Source of the DNA: Octopus bimaculoides
Taxonomy: Eukaryota
Direction: 5' to 3'
Assembly (NCBI RefSeq): GCF_001194135.2
Contig: NC_068990.1
Coordinates: 19,626,272 to 19,690,271 of the forward strand
DNA length: 64,000 bases
Position numbers and translations under genes: made by a program. Below are positions 6,600 to 64,000 of this stretch, in pieces (position 1 is the first letter of the stretch; each line of letters opens with the position of its first letter). Below the pieces are notes generated by a model that was not told the origin of the DNA, did no database searches, and saw only the letters and a list, made by a program, of their open reading frames with translations.

Positions 6600-6800
6600 T
6601 TAGGCACCAAGTAAGTAATTTGTGGAGAGGTAGTAAGCCAATTACACCCCGCCCCATCCCAGTACTCAACTGATACATATTTTATCAACCCCGCCAAAAG
6701 ATAAAGTCAACGTCGGAAGAATTTGAACTCAGAAGGTACAGAGGGATAAAAAACGTTAAACAGTTCGCCAGGTGTCCTAACGATTCTGCCAGCTCACCGA
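6600..6800 (-). mobile_element. tRNA-derived SINE family A, degenerate
   Basis: Reverse complement of the GAGCTGGCAGAATCGTTAG...TTCTGAGTTCAAATTC head and the central domain. Confidence 0.75.
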
Positions 6801-6898
6801 TTCCGTTCCCTAGACTAAAAATGGTTTCAAATTTCGGAAGTTATTGAGGGGAAGAGGAAGTCGATGATATTGCTTCTATAATATTTTTAATCTTTTAA

Positions 6899-7211
6899 GG
6901 CGGCGAGCTGGCAGAAACATTAGCACACCGGGCGAAATGCTTAGCGGTATTTTGTTTGTCTTTACGTTCTGAGTTCAAATTCCGCCGAGGTCGACTTTGC
7001 CTTTCATCCTTTCGGGGTCGATAAATTAAGTACCAGTTAAGCACTGGGGTCGATGTAATCGACTTAATCCGTTCGTCTGTTCTTGTTTGTCCGTTACGTT
7101 CTGAGTTTAAATTCCGCCGAGGTCGATTTTGCCTTTTATCCTTTCGGAGTCGATTAAATAAGTACCAGTTACGCACTGGGGTCAAGATAATCGACTTAAT
7201 CCATTGTCTGT
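6899..7211 (+). mobile_element. tRNA-derived SINE family A with an internal ~130-bp tandem duplication
   Basis: GGCGGCGAGCTGGCAGAAAC (A box TGGCAGAAAC), GAGTTCAAATTCC (B box), central GTCGACTTTGCCTTTCATCCTTTCGGGGTCGATAAATTAAGTACCAG. The body from TTACGTTCTGAG repeats at ~7094-7211. Confidence 0.92.
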
Positions 7212-9092: not shown

Positions 9093-9350
9093 GATCTCAC
9101 TGTGACTGTGGCCTCCGAGCTTCCCTCATATGAAGTTGAATTGATTGAAGACATAGATGAACATCATGTAGTCAATCGACAGTCTTTTGTGGATGAACAA
9201 GAATGGCATCTCTACATGCATACGGAAACTGAGAAGAAAGAACTGGCCATAGACCAAGCAGATGCTACTGTTCGGAGGTCAGCACTCTCTGTGAAATGTC
9301 GAGCAGCGCGGCGACCCGGTTATTTTGTTTGGAATATATTTATGGTAACG
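9093..9350 (+). CDS. Internal exon of a Cys-less (Pro-loop) pentameric ligand-gated ion channel: beta7 to beta10, pre-M1 and first half of M1
   Basis: Acceptor ttattctttcAG|GAT at 9092/9093 and donor ACG|GTGAGT at 9350/9351; 258 bp, phase 0/0. Protein DLTVTVASELPSYEVEL...FVDEQEWHL...ALSVKCRAARRPGYFVWNIFMVT. EW (beta9 start) and RRPGYF.WN (pre-M1 Arg and M1 start) are pLGIC hallmarks. Joins in frame to the exon at 61788. Confidence 0.92.
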
Positions 9351-9501
9351 GTGAGTGTTAACCTACGTTACACCTATGTTACACCTTTTATGTGATTCCC
9401 TATTGATAATGAACTGTCTTTCCCAGCCCCACATCTGGCCATACTTACAGAATTACAGTCAAACTAACAAGGAACACTACAATACAATTATGAATAACTG
9501 T

Positions 9502-23545: not shown

Positions 23546-23624
23546 CTGAAAAAAACTGAAATCAAGTAAGTCAAGAATGATGGATTTGTAGGACATCGGC
23601 TTCCTAATATAACTGTGCCCGAAA

Positions 23625-23765
23625 GGCGGTGAGCTGGCAGAAACGTTAGCACGCCGGACGAAATGCTTAGATGTATTTCGTCTGTCTTTACGTTCTGAAT
23701 TCAAATTCCGCCGAGGTCGACTTTGCCTTTCATCCTTTCGGCATCGATAAATTAAATGCCAGTGG
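23625..23765 (+). mobile_element. Family A SINE, 5' part
   Basis: GGCGGTGAGCTGGCAGAAACGTTAGCACGCCGGACGAAATGCTTAG...GAATTCAAATTCCGCCGAGGTCGACTTTGCC. Confidence 0.9.
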
Positions 23766-24699
23766 CGTACTAGAGTCACTCATCAAATTGCGGTCATCCT
23801 GGAGCACCACTTTGGAGGGTTTCGTCCAGCAAATTGACCTCAGTACTTATTTTAAATCCGGTACTTATTTTAAACACTAAGTTATGAGGACGCAAACAAA
23901 TCAACAATGTGTGTTGTGCTATGGGATGAGACCAATACAAATACACACATGCACACATATACACATATACATACACACATATATACATACATGAAAGGTT
24001 TACGCACAGTTTCTGTCTACCAGCATCACTCTTAAGCCATTGATCGGACCGGAGCTAGAGTTATCGCACAGGGGGACTGAATTCAAAACCTCGCGGTTGC
24101 AAATCTACCTTCTTAATCACAAAACCATGCTTGTTAATTTTTTATTGAAGTAACTATAAGGAAGTCTTATCAAATGAAATTACGTTGTACCTTGGTGTAT
24201 CACCACTCATGATACCGTACATTGATATGACGAAGTCAAATTCTTATCCTGGCAAAGGGGGAAGAGTAAGGTTTTGTTTTTTTTTAAAGACACTTTTAAG
24301 CTATAAGTAATGTACCCAGTTGAAATAATTTATATTAGAAAAAGTCAGACCGTGTGTAAAAGACCAGTGTTTTACCTACCTATTATAATGCTCCCTTGAC
24401 ACATGGCACCCTTTTCAGCTACAATACAGAACGAACGCTTTTATTGATTACCATACTGTATCTTCTGAAATACTGTAGTTAATTTCATGTAGAACCGTAG
24501 TGAGCAGAAACTCGATAGGGGTCGAGCGAAGAGCAAAGGAAATCTTTAGAGGAAGAAATCCTATCAAACAGATTCCAGCCCGTTACCTCCTGACATTGTA
24601 AGAGAGCCGAGTCAACCTTGATAGTGCTCGTGGGTGTTGTCCTGCTGTTATTCAAATACTTTCTTCGGTGGGGATTGAACTCACTTTATTTGTGAGTAA

Positions 24700-27749: not shown

Positions 27750-28512
27750 CAAATTACATCGAACTCATTATTCAAGTGGTGCTAATTCTATAGACCGCGA
27801 GAGGGTGAACGGCAAAGTCGACCACGGCGGTATTTGAACTCAGAACATACAGACGGACGAAATACTGCAAAGTATTTTGCCTGAAGTGCTAACCATTCGA
27901 CCAGTTCGTCGCTTTACCGATAAGAAATATTGGTTTCAGTTTTTGGTACAAGGCCAGTAGGAGCTAAGACAATGAAATCGACCCCAGTGTTCAACTGGTA
28001 CTTATTTTATCGATCTCCAAAGGATGAAAGGCAAGGTCGAACTGTTGTTCGTCGTATTAGCAACTCCGCCTGCTCGCCGCCTAATAATGATTAATAGTAA
28101 TGAATATTTTACTTCTGTCTTTATGTTCTGAGTTCAAATTCCGCCGAGGTCGACTTTGCCTTTCATCCTTTCGGTGTCGATAAATTAAGTACCAGTTGCG
28201 TACTGGGGTCGATCTAATTGTGCCTAGAGTAGAAAATAATGATAATGGATATTTTGTTGGTGATAGCATCATTTTTGTTGGTGGATTAAGCGATAACATT
28301 CTTTTCTACTTTAGGCACGAAACCCGAAACTTTTTGGGAGGGGAACAGTTGATTAGATCGACCCCAGTATGCAACTGGTATTTAATTTATCGTCCTCGAA
28401 AGGATGAAAGACAAAGTCAACCGCTGTGGAATTTGAACTCAGAACGTAACGGCAGACGAAGTACCGCTAAGCATTTCGCCCGGCGTGCTAACGTTTCTGC
28501 CAGCTCGCCGCC
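27750..28512. mobile_element. Cluster of four family A SINE pieces (-, -, +, -)
   Basis: Minus ~27750-27915 and ~27930-28040, plus ~28113-28225, minus ~28300-28512. Confidence 0.85.
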
Positions 28513-43849: not shown

Positions 43850-44035
43850 ACATTTTTGGGGAAGCGGCCAGTCGATTAGATCGACCCCAGTACGCAAATG
43901 GTACTTAATTTATCGACGCCGAAAGAATGAAGGGCAAAGTCGACCTCGGCGGAATTTGAACTCAGAACGTAAAGACAGAGGAAATACTGCTAAGCACTTC
44001 ACCCGCGGGCTAACGTTTTTACCAGCTCGCCGCCT
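43850..44035 (-). mobile_element. Family A SINE
   Basis: GATCGACCCCAGTACGCAAATGGTACTTAATTTATCGAC...GGCAAAGTCGACCTCGGCGGAATTTGAACTCAGAAC...CCAGCTCGCCGCC. Confidence 0.9.
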
Positions 44036-52349: not shown

Positions 52350-53067
52350 AATTTCTTTATTACCCACAAGGGGCCAAACACAGATGGGACGATACACACA
52401 TGCGGGGACAATTAACACATGATAGAATGGAACAATGAAATTAAACAATGNNNNNNNNNNNNNNNNNNNNNNNNNNNNNNNNNNNNNNNNNNNNNNNNNN
52501 NNNNNNNNNNNNNNNNNNNNNNNNNNNNNNNNNNNNNNNNNNNNNNNNNNNNNNNNNNNNNNNNNNNNNNNNNNNNNNNNNNNNNNNNNNNNNNNNNNNN
52601 NNNNNNNNNNNNNNNNNNNNNNNNNNNNNNNNNNNNNNNNNNNNNNNNNNNNNNNNNNNNNNNNNNNNNNNNNNNNNNNNNNNNNNNNNNNNNNNNNNNN
52701 NNNNNNNNNNNNNNNNNNNNNNNNNNNNNNNNNNNNNNNNNNNNNNNNNNNNNNNNNNNNNNNNNNNNNNNNNNNNNNNNNNNNNNNNNNNNNNNNNNNN
52801 NNNNNNNNNNNNNNNNNNNNNNNNNNNNNNNNNNNNNNNNNNNNNNNNNNNNNNNNNNNNNNNNNNNNNNNNNNNNNNNNNNNNNNNNNNNNNNNNNNNN
52901 NNNNNNNNNNNNNNNNNNNNNNNNNNNNNNNNNNNNNNNNNNNNNNNNNNNNNNNNNNNNNNNNNNNNNNNNNNNNNNNNNNNNNNNNNNNNNNNNNNNN
53001 NNNNNNNNNNNNNNNNNNNNNNNNNNNNNNNNNNNNNNNNNNNNNNNNNNNNNNNNNNNNNNNNNNT

Positions 53068-54032
53068 GCATGTTGTGTCTGTGTGTCTGTGTTTTCAGGT
53101 TCTGTGCTTTTAGGTTTCTGTAACTCTGCGTTATCTTCTTCGCTTCCTAGTGTATGTATGTCTGTGTGTTTATGCATCTGTGTATCTGTATGTCTGTGCG
53201 ATTGTGAGACTGTATGATTCTGTGGTAATGTTCTGCTGCTATTATCTTCTTTCCTCAGTGATCCCACTTGATCCTGTGATTTGCATTTTTTCCCTTGTTC
53301 GACTTTCGGCGATGAACTCCTCCTTTCTTTCTTCCTTGATTTAGCTTCCTCAAAATCAGCTATCTGCTCCTCTACCTGTGACTGTTTCTTCTCCTCTATC
53401 ACGCCTTCTTGCGTTTCCATTATTTCTGGGCACCTTCTTCTAATGTGACCTCTTTTATCACATTCGTAGCACTTTGGAGGTCTCCCCTCCAACATTATCT
53501 CCAGTTTGTCCTCGTTAGGCAGCTCCAGTGTCTCCGGTATGTCACTATAAACTTTCTGACTTGCTATAAAAAGCACATTCAATCCATACCCCCAGCAATT
53601 TATTTGTTGGGTTCTGCTTATCATAATTATCCTTACATCTTCTCTTTCTCTTTCAGGAAAAACTGCTGCCATTACCCATTCCAACTCTATTTTCGGTGGG
53701 ATCCTACCCACTCTAATCCACGTTGGACGTCTACCCAACTTATTGGGAAAGAACATCCAATTTCCTTTAGTTAATGTTTTATTGGCGTATTTCTTTGCTG
53801 CCTCCTCCGATACAAATGTGATCTCTACAGACGCGTATGTCTTGCCTCTTGTAAAAAACGACACATCTTCTTGCAATTCCTTCAAACACTCCTCCACCTC
53901 CTCCTTCGTTGCACTCTCTATTCTTTTATTTTTCCTTGAAAAGGATTTATATTCCACGACTCCAATTTCCATTTTCGTCTTTTCCTCCTCTGATGGGGTC
54001 AACTTTACGTTTGGCCCCTCCTTCTTTATCAT
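53068..54032 (-). mobile_element. LINE ORF1 (gag-like; RRM-like region and CX2CX4HX4C knuckle), probably L1/Tx1-type, antisense to the host gene
   Basis: More than 320 uninterrupted codons between two gaps; ASVEITFVSEEAAKKY and WIRVGRIPP (RRM-like); knuckle CYECDKRGHIRRRC at 53430-53471; K/E-rich low-complexity C-terminal part. The clade call is inferred from architecture. Confidence 0.8.
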
Positions 54033-55129
54033 TTCTTTATATTTNNNNNNNNNNNNNNNNNNNNNNNNNNNNNNNNNNNNNNNNNNNNNNNNNNNNNNNN
54101 NNNNNNNNNNNNNNNNNNNNNNNNNNNNNNNNNNNNNNNNNNNNNNNNNNNNNNNNNNNNNNNNNNNNNNNNNNNNNNNNNNNNNNNNNNNNNNNNNNNN
54201 NNNNNNNNNNNNNNNNNNNNNNNNNNNNNNNNNNNNNNNNNNNNNNNNNNNNNNNNNNNNNNNNNNNNNNNNNNNNNNNNNNNNNNNNNNNNNNNNNNNN
54301 NNNNNNNNNNNNNNNNNNNNNNNNNNNNNNNNNNNNNNNNNNNNNNNNNNNNNNNNNNNNNNNNNNNNNNNNNNNNNNNNNNNNNNNNNNNNNNNNNNNN
54401 NNNNNNNNNNNNNNNNNNNNNNNNNNNNNNNNNNNNNNNNNNNNNNNNNNNNNNNNNNNNNNNNNNNNNNNNNNNNNNNNNNNNNNNNNNNNNNNNNNNN
54501 NNNNNNNNNNNNNNNNNNNNNNNNNNNNNNNNNNNNNNNNNNNNNNNNNNNNNNNNNNAAAAAAAAAAAAATAATAATTTCATTTAATTTCTATGCTGCA
54601 AAATATAAAAGACTGAAAAATATTTTTAACCACAATAAATTGTTCAATTTAGTTTCAAAGAAAAGAAAAAAAGTGTTTTAAATAGAAAGGACATACTTAA
54701 GGAAAGAATTGAAAATCTTAGAAAAAAGGTCTTATTGAAAATCAATTTAACAGACGTTTATTGCAACACAAAGAGTTGAAAAGCAGAATAATGGTCTTAA
54801 AATGTTATCATTTGAATTTATATTATTTGTGTAAACAAAATATCATTGGCAGTAATTTAGACAGATAATGGCTATGAGGAGATATTTCATAAATGAAATA
54901 TCATTTTGTGGACAATTGAACGATGATTTTCATTAATATTATGATGGATGGAGTGACAGAATTGTTAAACCAGCAGAAAATATTCGTTGTGGTTTTGCAT
55001 TGCGATAGTTTACAAGAAGAGATCGACTTTACTCTTTACCCTTACAAAGGCTGTTAAAATATGGAATGTTGCCTTTTCCCTATAAATGTGTAACATTAAA
55101 ATCCTTTATTCTTCTTAATATGAGGAGAT

Positions 55130-57364: not shown

Positions 57365-57810
57365 ATGGCACTCCGGTGGTTAAGACGATGAGGGTTCCAA
57401 TTGATCTGATTAACCGAACAGCTTGCTCGCGAAATTAACGTGCATGTTGGTTGAGCACTCCACAAACACACGTGCCCCTAACATAGTCTTCGGCGAGATT
57501 CAGCGTGGAACAGTGCGTTATTTCTTTACTACCCACAAGGGGCTACACACAGAGGGGACAAACAAACACGGATTAAGTCGATTATATCGACCCCAGTGCG
57601 TAACTGGTACTTATTTAATCGACCCCGAAAGGATGAAAGGCAAAGTCGACCTCGGCGGAATTTGAACTCAGAACGTAGCGGCAGACGAAATACGGCTAAG
57701 CATTTCGCCCGGTGTGCTAACGTTCCTGCCAGCTCGCCGCCTTAGCGTGGAACAGTGTGTGTCAAGGCTGGCCCTTTGAAATACAGGTACTACATTTTTG
57801 CCAGCTCAGT
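57365..57810 (-). mobile_element. Family B SINE interrupted by a family A SINE
   Basis: GGCACTCCG...GAGGGTTCCA.TTGATC...GAGATTCAGCGTG[insert]AGCGTG..CAGTGTG..CAAGGCTGGCCCTTTGAAATACAGG. Confidence 0.88.
57516..57743 (-). mobile_element. Full-length young family A SINE with a 14-bp TSD
   Basis: AGCGTGGAACAGTG at 57502-57515 and 57744-57757 flanks a complete head-to-tail copy. Confidence 0.95.
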
Positions 57811-60530: not shown

Positions 60531-61787
60531 CTCATCTCTTAAATATAGAACTGTATTAAAGTAACAGACTTAAAAATAAGTACTGAGGCTCGATTTTCCC
60601 CCGAAAGATATTGCAGGCTGCGTTATGCACAAGCTAATAATTCCAGTTGAATTTTAAAGCCCAGAATTGATAGAAAGTGAACCATCCATATATGTTCAAG
60701 TGTACCTTTGAAATCCAAACACAAGAGATAAATGCCTATAGAAAGACGTACCACAATAGCAGATTCCCTTCACTTTTTATCCTATAAAATTATAACACTG
60801 TCATAAATACCCTCACCGAAATATTCAATAAGTAGCGACTCGTAGAATTAAATATCTAATTCAGAAAGAAATCATCGGCTGTAAAATAATTTCCTGCTGT
60901 CGTATGATTTTTTTACGTATCTCTGTTCGGTCATTTTTAACCACAAATTTGATATCTGCTCGCCATCAATAGACAGAAATACAGTATTTTTTCTGCTTAA
61001 TTTCATTGGAAAGGTCACAAGTGGTGATGTCTGCCTTCATAAATTAATCTGATAGAATTTCTTTGATACAATTTTACGAATTTCTCTTCGTAAATTGAAT
61101 TTTACTTCGGGTAATCTCTCATAATACTGAAATTATCAACACATAAAATAAAATAAATAAACTTATTAGCCTGTTGACTCTCCCGATAGAATAGAGTTCT
61201 TTTTTTAATAAAATAAACAAAGTTTGAAATAATTTGATGAGATAAATTAATTTTCTTTTTTTTAAGAAATATTCATAAGCTAGAATATGATAAACTCTGC
61301 CACGCGCGCGCGTCTGCGTATGTTCGTATGTGAGCAAGTTTAAAACGATTTTTCATTTCTTTCTTGGTAACTTCTTTCTACATTTTTTAAACAGTAATGT
61401 CAGATTTCTTTATTTAATCTAGTTCCACATCACAATTGCTGAAATACCTATTTATCATTCCTGATAAGAAAATCTGTGGATAGTATGTCTCTCTTAGTAT
61501 GATTCGCTCTGTATGATCTTCCGCCTTGGAGAGATAAAATCCAATATCCTTTAGCAAATATTGAACTAGCTCAGTGAAATCTATACTATATCAATAAAAA
61601 CATACAAATATCACACTATCGCACAATCACATTTTCCCTTCTTTACAAATTCTATCCTCTTCTTTTTGTATTCTATTGTTTTGCATTTTTATTGATTTAT
61701 ATTATGTCTTCGATTTATTTACTATTGTTTAAAGCAATGCCACTTCTGGCAGCTTATTTTCGATCCTTTGCTGCTATTCTATTCCAG

Positions 61788-61943
61788 TTTTTAATCTGCA
61801 GCTTGGCCTTCACTACATTCTCAGTGGATAAGAAATACCCACAAAATCGACTTCAGCTTTCTTTCACACTCGTCCTCACGGCAGTGGCCTTCAAATCTGT
61901 TGTCAATCAGAGTTTACCGCGGATATCCTACCTCACATATATG
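61788..61943 (+). CDS. Internal exon of the same pentameric ligand-gated ion channel: second half of M1, M2 pore helix and M2-M3 loop
   Basis: Acceptor ctattctattccAG|TTT at 61787/61788 and donor ATG|GTAAGA at 61943/61944; 156 bp, phase 0/0. FLICSLAFTTFSVDKKYPQNRLQLSFTLVLTAVAFKSVVNQSLPRISYLTYM contains R0', T6', L9' and the LP-x-x-Y-x-T M2-M3 motif. Confidence 0.95.
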
Positions 61944-62047
61944 GTAAGAAATGAAACATTTTCCTTGTCTAATACTTCTTTAATTGTCCATAATTTGTAT
62001 ACCAGATGTCCCGTACTTTTGAATACCATGATATAAGAATATTAACA

Positions 62048-62650
62048 CGGCGAGCTGGCAGAATCATTACCGCACCAGTAAATGCTTAGCGGCATTTCTT
62101 ATGGCCTTACGTTCTGAGTTCAAATGCCGCAGACTTCGACTTTATCTTTCATCGCTTCGGGCTCGATAAAATAAGTACCAACAGAGCGATGGGGTCGATG
62201 TAATCAGCATGCTCTTTCCCTAAATTTGCTGGTTTTGTGTTAAATTCGAAATAATTGTATATGAATACTTATATATGATTTTAATGAGTGCGGAGTGCTG
62301 ATAGAAACGTTAACAAGTCTGACAAAAGACATTATGTTTTTTCTTTTGGCTTTGTGCTCTTAGTTCAAATGCTGTTTCGGTCTAATTTTCCTGTCTTTCT
62401 TTCAAGGATCGATAAAGTAAATACCAGCTGAGCATTGGGATTGATGTAATCGACTTACCGCTAAGGCGGCGAGCTGGCAGAATGGTTAACATGCTGGGCG
62501 AAATGCTTAGCGGTATTTCGTCTGTATTTATGTTCTGAGTTCAAATTCCGCCGAGGTCACCTTTGCCTTTCATCCTTTCAGGGTCGATAAATTAAGTACC
62601 AGTTGCGTACTGGGATCAATCTAATTGACTGGCTCTCTCTCCCCAAATTT
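62048..62650 (+). mobile_element. Three tandem family A SINEs just downstream of the M2 exon
   Basis: Copies at ~62048-62240, ~62290-62460 (decayed) and ~62465-62640. Confidence 0.88.
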
Positions 62651-64000
62651 TGGGCCTTGTGCCTAAAGTAGAAAAGGATCGACTTACTACTCCTCTCATA
62701 ATTTCTAGCTTTAAGCTAAAATTACAAACGATTATGTTTGAATATCCACCATTCAGACAAATGATTGTAAATGAAGAATTCATATAATTATGAAGAGTGC
62801 GATTGTGTTCTGGTATTTCGCTGATCTTCTTTAACCATTTCTTTGTCTTGCAGCATATTTCTTTAGAATGTAATGATATATATTAATGATACAAACTACC
62901 TTTTTTCTCTGTCTGTATATATTATCTGGGAAAGTAAATATATTTAAATAATGTTTTAAAACGAATGGATTAATATACAGAATGATAAATTGTTCGTCTG
63001 ATTATAAAAAAAAAAAAAAAACTTTCATTGTAAATAATTATGCTGAAAGCTTACACAGGTGCTAAAGAAATAATGGTATCGAAGGAGCAAATAAACTGAA
63101 AGGTGAATTGTGTTTTTTTTTTTTTTGTTTTTCTGCAGAATGAAACGTTACCTTTAAGATGACTTGTGGTTCAATTTATATGATGTGTACAATAAATACA
63201 CACACACACACACCGGTTAAAAAAGATTAGAGATTTTATACAAAATCAAATTCCTATATATAAAAGATGGAGGTGGAAATAGCAGAGAAGTAAGTCTAAG
63301 ACTTTTCAATTTAAGAGGGAATTTAATAAAAATTACTAAAATATTATATAAAGAAAATATTACCGGTTTCGATATATCTCATCTTATCAAATATGTGTAA
63401 AAAATTATTAAAATTTGGAGTAAAAACAGCTTCTCTTCTGTCTGGGGAGGGGTCAAGTGCATGTCTTGACCCTAGGCAGAACATAAACAATCTCTCTCTC
63501 TCTCTCACACACACATATATATATTTATGTACGTGTTACATATGTCATGCAAGAGATGAGCACTTGTGCATTTGAGTATGAAAGAGAAAGAAAGAGAGAG
63601 AGAGAGGCATGGCAAGTTCTTCTCTATGGTTCCCTCTGTTTCTCTTAGTTTTATGAATGCATTAACTGCGGTCAGTTTTCTGAAATTCACTTAACTGTCT
63701 TGTCTAGTCACGTGAACTATTTGAATAACATTCAAGTACATTTGACCTGACATAGAAAGCTTAATATATATTGTCCCCCGAATGAAGATACGACTGGTAA
63801 CGTATTAAAATGATATTTGTTTCCTTTACACAATTGCTTCTGAAATTAACTTACCAGTCACCGTGGTAATTCTATGCTTTCATATATATATAATCGGTCA
63901 CACAAATATAGTGTATGTACGCCGATACAATTTACATACTCAGAAATGCTTGTAACTTGTAACGTAATTTATTATTATATATATATATATATATATATAT

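Follow-up and report, generated by a model that had tools for sequence, protein, structure and literature searches.

A Cys-less pentameric ligand-gated ion channel subunit gene of Octopus bimaculoides, with a locally ELIC-like pore helix and a possibly reversed membrane orientation

Introduction

The locus described here raises the question of what kind of ion channel an octopus might encode with a pore helix that resembles that of a bacterial protein. It lies in a stretch of 64,000 nucleotides of the Octopus bimaculoides genome (RefSeq assembly GCF_001194135.2, contig NC_068990.1, positions 19,626,272 to 19,690,271 of the forward strand), referred to below as the window, and is centred on positions 61788-61943, which a first-pass annotation had assigned from the letters of the sequence to an orphan pentameric ligand-gated ion channel (pLGIC) with a pore helix like that of ELIC. 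The segment is almost certainly a constitutive exon of the Octopus gene 'cys-loop ligand-gated ion channel-like', which encodes a Cys-less pLGIC subunit; the octopus gene is the cephalopod member, already annotated automatically, of a known but uncharacterized family. The likeness to ELIC is a local one, and features found throughout the family suggest that its subunits may be inserted into the membrane with both termini in the cytosol.

The exons and their gene

Two exons, here called A and B, are present in the window. Judged by sequence comparison, they are shown to belong to a gene encoding a pLGIC subunit of the Cys-less ('Pro-loop') eukaryotic clade, and exon B supplies the end of M1, the pore-lining M2 and the M2-M3 loop. 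The relevant features are as follows.

9093-9350, + strand: exon A, 86 codons, with acceptor tttcag and donor ACG/gtgagt, located by tblastn with relatives
9278-9283, + strand: internal alternative donor in exon A, AG/gtcagc, located from O. vulgaris isoform X3 (P0028)
9351-61787, + strand: intron between exons A and B, 52,437 bp, its edges given by tblastn and cDNA
61782-61787, + strand: 3' splice acceptor of exon B, ttccag, after a pyrimidine-rich tract (sequence and cDNA boundary)
61788-61943, + strand: exon B of the pLGIC gene, 52 codons, phase 0/0 (reading frame, tblastn and cDNA)
61944-61949, + strand: canonical 5' splice donor after exon B, ATG/gtaaga
Exon B, C-terminal half of M1: FLICSLAFTTFSV
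Exon B, M1-M2 loop: DKKYPQN
Exon B, M2: R0' L Q L S F T6' L V L9' T A V A13' F K S V V N Q20'
Exon B, M2-M3 loop: SLPRISYLTYM

The translation of exon B is FLICSLAFTTFSVDKKYPQNRLQLSFTLVLTAVAFKSVVNQSLPRISYLTYM, which includes the 31-residue string that the first-pass annotation had compared with ELIC, and the span that it had marked coincides exactly with the exon as defined by splice sites, reading frame and cDNA edges. In tblastn comparisons exon B matches Octopus proteins at 100% and a land snail fragment at 87%. Exon A begins just past the Pro-loop at DLTVTVAS and spans the DEQEW strand, the pre-M1 sequence KCRAARRPG and the start of M1 (YFVWNIFMVT), its translation extending through KCRAARRPGYFVWNIFMVT; it is 100% identical over 63 aa to O. 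vulgaris isoform X3 (P0028). This isoform departs from exon A after the arginine pair (…ATVRR/LFAQKIK…), from which we infer that the donor at 9278-9283 is the one it uses. The truncated isoform X3 would encode the β-sandwich domain only, and its terminal exon was not found in the window. When the whole window was searched by tblastn with full-length relatives, exons A and B were the only exons of the gene recovered, and there is no match to M3 or M4 anywhere in it; the exons for the N-terminal part precede position 1, and those for M3, M4 and the tail lie past position 64000.

The joining of exon B to an upstream exon, which had been presumed from the letters, is borne out by two cDNA contigs from a related cephalopod (L006 and L007; runs SRR3011300 and SRR21372860) that contain a complete open reading frame (ORF) of 450 aa. 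In these contigs exon A directly abuts exon B at cDNA positions 1096/1097, position 1097 corresponding to window position 61788; nucleotide identity is 80% for exon A and 91.7% for exon B, and homology stops at the exon edges. Since two cephalopod cDNA contigs join them at the inferred boundaries, exons A and B are joined in transcripts.

The window gene is O. bimaculoides LOC106884076, and the two-exon peptide is 100% identical to isoforms from O. bimaculoides, O. sinensis and O. vulgaris. In all three species the RefSeq/GenBank label is 'cys-loop ligand-gated ion channel-like', and 'cys-loop ligand-gated ion channel' is the database name of ELIC; the gene is already annotated by RefSeq and named after ELIC, which speaks against regarding it as an unannotated gene. 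Alternative splicing of the locus is heavy: the Octopus isoforms (P0346-P0365) have six alternative N-termini and at least four post-M4 tails, and three alternative micro-inserts (TLQ, LGGKTGEEHLCTRE and FDSDEGRMASVSRGRKSSK) follow GQTHT in the β-sandwich domain. We note that the insert FDSDEGRMASVSRGRKSSK bears a basic, Ser-rich motif resembling a kinase site.

Two gene models, one from O. bimaculoides in 2015 (XP_014790781; P0351, LOC106884076) and one from O. vulgaris (P0349), end in the intron after exon A, and the window contains two exons only, 52 kb apart, so that one might think of a decaying or non-expressed fragment, a pseudogene consisting of two chance ORFs. Reading past the exon A donor (9345-9392, + strand) gives VSVNLRYTYVTPFM followed by a stop codon, and these are the last residues of the 2015 model. 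The O. vulgaris read-through differs, which marks the window as O. bimaculoides. The 2015 model is therefore truncated by read-through of exon A into the gap-rich intron, and the truncated models are explained in this way. Both exons are moreover intact with canonical splice sites, the proteins that they encode are 100% identical in three Octopus species, and exon B is 92% identical in nucleotides to the orthologous cDNA of another cephalopod. The notion of a pseudogene can thus be dismissed with near certainty.

Fold and pore

Full-length checks were made on the O. bimaculoides protein P0078 (418 aa), which passes the Pfam model Neur_chan_LBD (PF02931) with 30.1 bits (cut-off 26) and scores 27.2 bits on PF02932, slightly below its cut-off of 28.1. 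An AlphaFold (AF2) model made with a 69-sequence alignment has a predicted local distance difference test score (pLDDT) of 82 and a predicted template-modelling score (pTM) of 0.74, and consists of 10 strands and helices at 212-234, 240-264, 271-298 and 302-365. With Foldseek it retrieves GABA-A, GlyR and ELIC structures at E ~1e-19. On the strength of this model we are confident in predicting that P0078 is a pLGIC subunit, a β-sandwich plus four helices. The pLGIC hallmark FPFDVQ is at residues 131-136, and F131, P132 and D134 are invariant in the 69 sequences, as are the pre-M1 arginines R209 and R210, R243 (0') and L252 (9'); in the family the lysine at 15' is also invariant, and N242 (−1') is at least 90% conserved.

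The pore-facing positions are Q2', T6', L9', A13', S16' and Q20', and M2 is preceded by P-Q-N-R. Five subunits would form a pore lined by Q2', T6', L9' as a hydrophobic gate, A13' and Q20', and gating would pass from the β-sandwich by way of the β1-β2 loop (GEIDT), the Pro-loop (FPFDVQ), the pre-M1 segment (RR) and the M2-M3 loop (LPRISYLT), four elements that vary little or not at all within the family. Charge selectivity is not readable from the sequence, since the residue at −1' is Asn, neither the Glu of ELIC and cationic receptors nor part of the Pro-Ala-Arg of anionic ones.

Resemblance to ELIC

The first-pass annotation had aligned the M2 and M2-M3 region without gaps to a quoted ELIC sequence, and had found it closer than nicotinic acetylcholine receptor (nAChR) or GABA-A pores. 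The quoted string is correct when compared with the ELIC chains in the PDB, and both parts of the comparison hold, with 16/31 identities to ELIC against 7/31 and 10/31 respectively. Identities over the 31 residues, sums of BLOSUM62 scores and scores with a hidden Markov model (HMM) of the family are as follows.

ELIC: 16/31 identical, gapless; BLOSUM62 sum 76; family HMM 79 bits
GlyR α1: 12/31; BLOSUM62 sum 48; family HMM 58 bits
GluCl: 11/31; BLOSUM62 sum 51; family HMM 46 bits
GABA-A β3: 10/31; BLOSUM62 sum 48; family HMM 51 bits
GLIC: 8/31; BLOSUM62 sum 41; family HMM 38.5 bits
nAChR α7: 7/31; BLOSUM62 sum 34; family HMM 29.5 bits, the lowest among the references
Bradyrhizobium-type homologues: 6-8/31; family HMM 33-41 bits

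The reference sequences for GLIC, GABA-A β3, GlyR α1, GluCl α and nAChR α7 were checked over their full length against the PDB at 690-1138 bits, and residues 7-269 of the ELIC reference were checked against a PDB alignment. When the PDB was searched with the two-exon peptide the best match was ELIC (E=2e-9), followed by GABA-A γ2 (7e-7), and the family profile searched against the whole PDB gives 82 bits for ELIC, 68 for GABA-A γ2 and 60 for GlyR. Cephalopod and other mollusc proteins match the two-exon peptide with E-values down to 1e-48; exon B alone scores 20 bits on Pfam Neur_chan_memb, under the 28.1-bit cut-off. By these sequence scores the similarity of the exons to pLGICs is well beyond chance.

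The description of the pore helix as ELIC-like, or of a bacterial type, is thus apt for this short region (16/31) but not for the protein in general. Over 302 well-aligned columns whole-protein identity is 19.2% to ELIC and 19.0% to GABA-A β3, which weighs against calling the protein ELIC-like overall, and the Foldseek matches to ELIC, GABA-A and GlyR, with template-modelling (TM) scores of 0.62-0.75, do not separate which is nearer. A sea-urchin relative has RLSVTVTL where the octopus protein has RLQLSFTL, and bacterial homologues other than ELIC agree poorly with exon B (6-8/52). In a neighbour-joining (NJ) tree (302 columns, 200 bootstraps, with few outgroups, none of them from protists), ELIC falls among the prokaryotes at 38% support, and the deep nodes (38-54%) give no robust join to the octopus protein. 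The octopus and ELIC sequences share RLQxSFTLxLTxVA and LPR in M2 and M2-M3, both proteins are Cys-less, and both have an M3-M4 loop of about 10 residues. They differ at −1', where ELIC has Glu (S-E-R-L-Q) and octopus has Asn (Q-N-R-L-Q), and at 16', where ELIC has Phe and octopus Ser; ELIC is bacterial and has no tail after M4, whereas the octopus gene has a 52-kb spliceosomal intron. ELIC carries a signal peptide.

As ELIC is the single best match among solved structures, and the lack of a Cys-loop disulfide and of an N-terminal helix and the short M3-M4 loop are prokaryote-like, a recent horizontal acquisition of an ELIC-type bacterial gene, or bacterial contamination, has to be weighed; Jaiteh, Taly & Hénin (2016; PMC4795631) have raised lateral transfer as a possible origin of the metazoan Cys-less clade. 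However, a pattern scan of 185,579 prokaryotic genomes found no close bacterial donor and only five bacterial relatives, which are 24-27% identical over the N-terminal domain and all have signal peptides. The octopus gene has spliceosomal introns, one of which spans 52 kb and abounds in octopus repeats, its transcripts are spliced, its family extends across Spiralia and echinoderms, and its whole-protein identity to ELIC is 19%. Because the introns, the splicing in transcripts, the wide animal distribution and the distance of the few prokaryotic relatives already contradict it, a recent bacterial origin is effectively excluded, and we regard it as highly improbable.

The Cys-less family

The proposal that exon B and its upstream exon belong to a Cys-less Pro-loop pLGIC is sustained once the full-length Octopus proteins are taken into account, while the window alone shows only the leucine at the second cysteine position (DLTV, exon A). 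The Pro-loop is ENLELNDFPFDVQDL, in which E124 and L138 occupy the two Cys-loop cysteine positions; the FPFD motif and the first of these positions lie in an exon upstream of the window and were read from the full-length proteins. In the 69-sequence alignment E124 is invariant and L138 is at least 90% conserved, and there is no conserved cysteine pair in the domain. The NJ tree places the octopus protein among Cys-less metazoan sequences, with support of 86-91% for a spiralian-dominated core and 73% when echinoderms are included. This Cys-less clade lies outside a 100%-supported GABA-A/GlyR/GluCl clade and apart from α7 and the prokaryotes, and the deeper nodes are unresolved. A position outside the nAChR and GABA-A/GlyR clades had been anticipated, and the tree agrees (73-91% for the grouping), with nAChRs represented by α7 alone.

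Receptors of this kind had been said to be known from molluscs and other invertebrates without a ligand, and the literature concurs (PMC4795631, PMC9874803). Jaiteh et al. described a Cys-less eukaryotic pLGIC clade, dominated by lophotrochozoans and with no ligand known, and found that its lophotrochozoan part groups with the Cys-less channels of protists and falls outside the Cys-loop clade (PMC4795631). Johnson et al. (2023; PMC9874803) found that the clade is also present in schistosomes, again with no ligand known, and both papers call its biology unknown. The octopus protein resembles these channels in having no Cys-loop cysteines and in keeping the FPxD Pro-loop. The clade as reported comprises molluscs, annelids, flatworms and echinoderm relatives, and the 2016 list of molluscs does not include cephalopods; for schistosome members Glu is reported at −2'/−1' (PMC9874803), whereas the octopus subfamily has Q-N-R.

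A library clustered at 50% contains 669 representatives of the family at E <= 1e-30, and at E <= 4e-66 family members account for 150/150 of the matches listed. In full-length alignment (A1) the octopus protein is 64-71% identical to gastropod and bivalve proteins and 40-55% identical to those of annelids, nemerteans, brachiopods, flatworms and rotifers; local BLASTP alignments with a composite query give higher values, 71-79% to gastropod and bivalve proteins. Relatives are also present in sea urchins and sea cucumbers. The gene is not lineage-restricted; it belongs to a large and very conserved family of Spiralia with echinoderm relatives. There are 48 invariant columns, mostly in the β1-β2 loop (K-x-GEIDT), the Pro-loop, the DEQEW strand, the pre-M1 segment (C-x3-RR), M2 and the M2-M3 loop. 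In the fold of a pLGIC subunit such elements are arranged around the domain-domain interface and the pore, and the pattern is therefore as expected of a working gated channel with a diverged ligand site; the conservation of the family implies function.

A different placement among animal receptors would make the gene a secondarily Cys-less member of the GABA-A/GlyR/GluCl group, comparable with the nematode 'secondary' Cys-less receptors, its ELIC-like M2 having arisen by chance. GABA-A γ2 (68 bits) and GlyR (60 bits) are the next-best PDB matches after ELIC, RefSeq calls some family members 'GABA receptor subunit γ-like', and the octopus SLPRISY resembles the SLPKVSY of GlyR; more generally, the anionic receptors are the next-best sequence matches (46-68 bits), have equal Foldseek similarity and share an M2-M3 loop of the form SLPK/R-x-SY. 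They have, however, the Cys-loop disulfide and a PAR motif, whereas the octopus protein has P-Q-N-R and no Cys-loop cysteines. Its M3-M4 loop is of 10 residues, in contrast to 80-118 aa in GABA-A β3 and GlyR α1, and its post-M4 tail is long where the ends of anionic receptors are short. Anionic Cys-loop receptors carry signal peptides, and the octopus protein has none. The NJ tree splits the family (73-91%) from the 100%-supported GABRB3/GLRA1/GluCl clade, and the tree of Jaiteh et al. (PMC4795631) puts the lophotrochozoan Cys-less group with protist channels. Membership in the anionic clade therefore seems very unlikely to us, and a place in the Cys-less clade is the better account.

The first-pass annotation was also right to keep the gene apart from the nAChR-derived chemotactile receptors of octopus, a group judged here by its description: the gene is Cys-less and has introns, and α7 gives the lowest score (29.5 bits). 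Both are divergent cephalopod subunits of the pLGIC superfamily, but the chemotactile receptors belong to the nAChR branch and have a Cys-loop, whereas the present gene is Cys-less and has at least one intron of 52 kb. Chemotactile receptors are described as intronless in a passage of PMC13174522 that cites earlier work, and none is found among the 60 best PDB matches of the family profile. Two other candidate relatives were rejected. Alpo4 of Alvinella is nAChR-like with a Cys-loop, and the MolluscaGenes preprint uses 'Cys-less' for a clade within the nAChR superfamily, recognized by a loop-C YxCC motif, which is not evidently the family of the octopus channel. Planarian gabrg3L-1 and gabrg3L-2 are described as Cys-less ligand-gated ion channel homologues of the flatworm clade, expressed together with pkd1L-2 in putative mechanosensory neurons; after RNA interference of gabrg3L the worms make seizure-like movements and their fission behaviour changes (PMC9874803, PMC8602322). 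Some members of the octopus channel's family have likewise been given 'GABA-γ-like' names automatically, and we treat the planarian genes as possible relatives only.

Membrane orientation

As a measure of signal peptides we used the highest 9-residue Kyte-Doolittle mean within the first 45 residues before the domain. Among 227 Met-starting family members, 218 have a value below 2.0 or fewer than nine residues there (median 0.94); as controls, the five bacterial homologues give 3.4-3.7 and three human receptor signal peptides give 2.1-3.2. None of the six alternative Octopus N-termini has a hydrophobic signal sequence. The N-terminal extensions of the family are 0-190 residues long, hydrophilic and often polybasic (KRRRSRKKS, RRYS), some with a helical motif such as L-x-ALE-x-TI, and no domain that might fix the side of the membrane was found attached to the long N-termini. 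A DUF4706 domain follows the channel in one leech model, which is probably a fused gene model.

At the other end of the protein, the M3-M4 loop has a median of 10 residues in the family, and M4 is followed by a conserved motif, C-K-[KR]-R-R-x-M-x-x-K-D-[KR]-E-Y. The post-M4 tail is 15-142 residues long (median 48) and its first 15 residues contain on average 6.2 K/R, whereas canonical receptors, ELIC and GLIC end within 0-9 residues of M4. The AF2 model predicts a helix past M4 with confidence (pLDDT 86-93). Lysines and arginines flanking the membrane segments number 12.1 on the β-sandwich side versus 3.4 on the opposite side, and the former number is the larger in 68/69 sequences. The domain has no conserved N-x-S/T sequon, no column exceeding 5/69 sequences.

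An N-in/C-in insertion is predicted because there is no signal peptide, because the positive-inside rule applies at M4 with its basic tail, and because disulfide and conserved sequons are absent. We see about an even chance that the octopus subunit is inserted in this way, its ligand-binding-type domain and both regulatory tails being cytosolic, and it is an equally balanced proposition that the whole bilaterian Cys-less family is reversed with respect to every characterized pLGIC. In that case the β-sandwich domain would lie in the cytosol together with the variable extension before it and the long tail past M4, and only the 8-residue M1-M2 loop and the M3-M4 loop of about 10 residues would face the outside or the lumen. 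The channel, a pentamer, would be gated by a ligand or ion acting from within the cell, and the regulatory, alternatively spliced sequence resembling an intracellular domain would have left the M3-M4 loop for the two ends of the protein. In the literature searched we found no statement on the topology or signal peptide of Cys-less channels; the term 'signal peptide' is absent from PMC4795631 and PMC9874803, and 'topology' in the 2016 paper refers to the validation of hits with TMHMM and to tree shape.

Several points weigh against the reversed orientation. The topology is derived from crude heuristics (Kyte-Doolittle windows and charge counts), not from SignalP, DeepTMHMM or experiment, and the family is considered here by sequence comparison and structure prediction. 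To our knowledge every pLGIC characterized so far has the opposite orientation, with an extracellular ligand-binding domain. The pre-M1 arginines are also found on the extracellular side of canonical receptors, and the α7 nAChR has an extracellular post-M4 'latch' helix, so that an extension past M4 does not by itself establish a cytosolic position. A moderately hydrophobic N-terminus is present in 9/227 sequences, with a clear extra segment in P0315 and values of 2.0-2.4 in the eight others. The sole functional hint, by way of planarian gabrg3L, is indirect. We note that P0315 (454 aa) has basic residues and then a strongly hydrophobic 20-residue segment before the β-sandwich domain, together with an acidic C-terminal tail, and this protein might hold the canonical orientation by means of an extra N-terminal anchor.

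In the canonical arrangement the β-sandwich would be extracellular or luminal without a cleavable signal peptide, M1 serving as a reverse signal-anchor or some other route being taken, and the tail would be extracellular. The uniform orientation of all experimentally characterized pLGICs, the AF2 model, which is that of an ordinary pLGIC subunit, the presence of pre-M1 arginines in canonical receptors too and the hydrophobic N-termini of P0315, P0140, P0175 and P0135 all favour it. However, it requires that 170-400 residues, often polybasic, be translocated without a signal peptide in 96% of the 227 sequences, which come from at least seven animal phyla, and all six alternative Octopus first exons lack one. 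It also requires that 5-7 K/R directly after M4, followed by 40-140 aa of alternatively spliced sequence rich in Ser, Lys and Arg, be placed outside the cell, together with a domain that has neither a conserved N-glycosylation sequon nor a disulfide. We consider the canonical orientation quite possible, at slightly less than an even chance.

Other features of the window

The remainder of the window contains repeats, mobile-element remnants and assembly gaps. A repeat of about 170 bp resembling a short interspersed nuclear element (SINE) occurs about 21 times, as copies or fragments and on both strands, at 73-93% identity to the copy at 62440-62640.

6656-7196, 23623-23790, 28114-28512, 43867-44035 and 57576-57747: examples of the SINE-like repeat
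62048-62180 and 62440-62640: two SINE-like copies just downstream of exon B
53067-54044, − strand: 326-codon open frame between two assembly gaps in the big intron, with a CCHC zinc knuckle, CYECDKRGHIRRRC
1-333, − strand: open frame of 111 codons that is cut off by the start of the window and encodes a homeodomain-like helix-turn-helix (Pfam HTH_23, 27.6 bits)

The frame at 53067-54044 scores 19.1 bits on Pfam zf-CCHC, slightly below the cut-off, and looks like a remnant of a retroelement gag gene; that at 1-333 resembles the DNA-binding part of a Tc1/mariner-type transposase. The window is rich in TA/CA microsatellites and AT-rich trinucleotide repeats and is broken by 15 runs of N, 10-973 bp long and adding up to 6,376 bases; the assembly is of draft quality, with parts of the intron unrepresented. 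The 52,437-bp intron holds 12 of the 15 gaps, about 17 SINE-like copies and the gag-like ORF.

Conclusions

The local likeness to ELIC is real, and it should not be taken as a sign of bacterial origin or of ELIC-like selectivity. The family has been known from sequence surveys; the missing signal peptide, the basic tail after M4 and their implication for topology are not discussed in PMC4795631 or PMC9874803. With an identity of 64-71% between the octopus and other mollusc proteins, 669 representatives and an absence from the standard model animals (PMC9874803), it merits more attention; in planarians, mechanosensory neurons require genes that may be related to it. What deserves further study is the set of features, seen throughout the family, that point to a reversed orientation. 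Should this orientation prove true, a pLGIC would for the first time have its ligand-binding domain in the cytosol, both the ligands to be screened and the side of the membrane from which they are applied would change, and it might help to explain why no ligand has been assigned to the family, for which we found no screen of external ligands in the literature searched.

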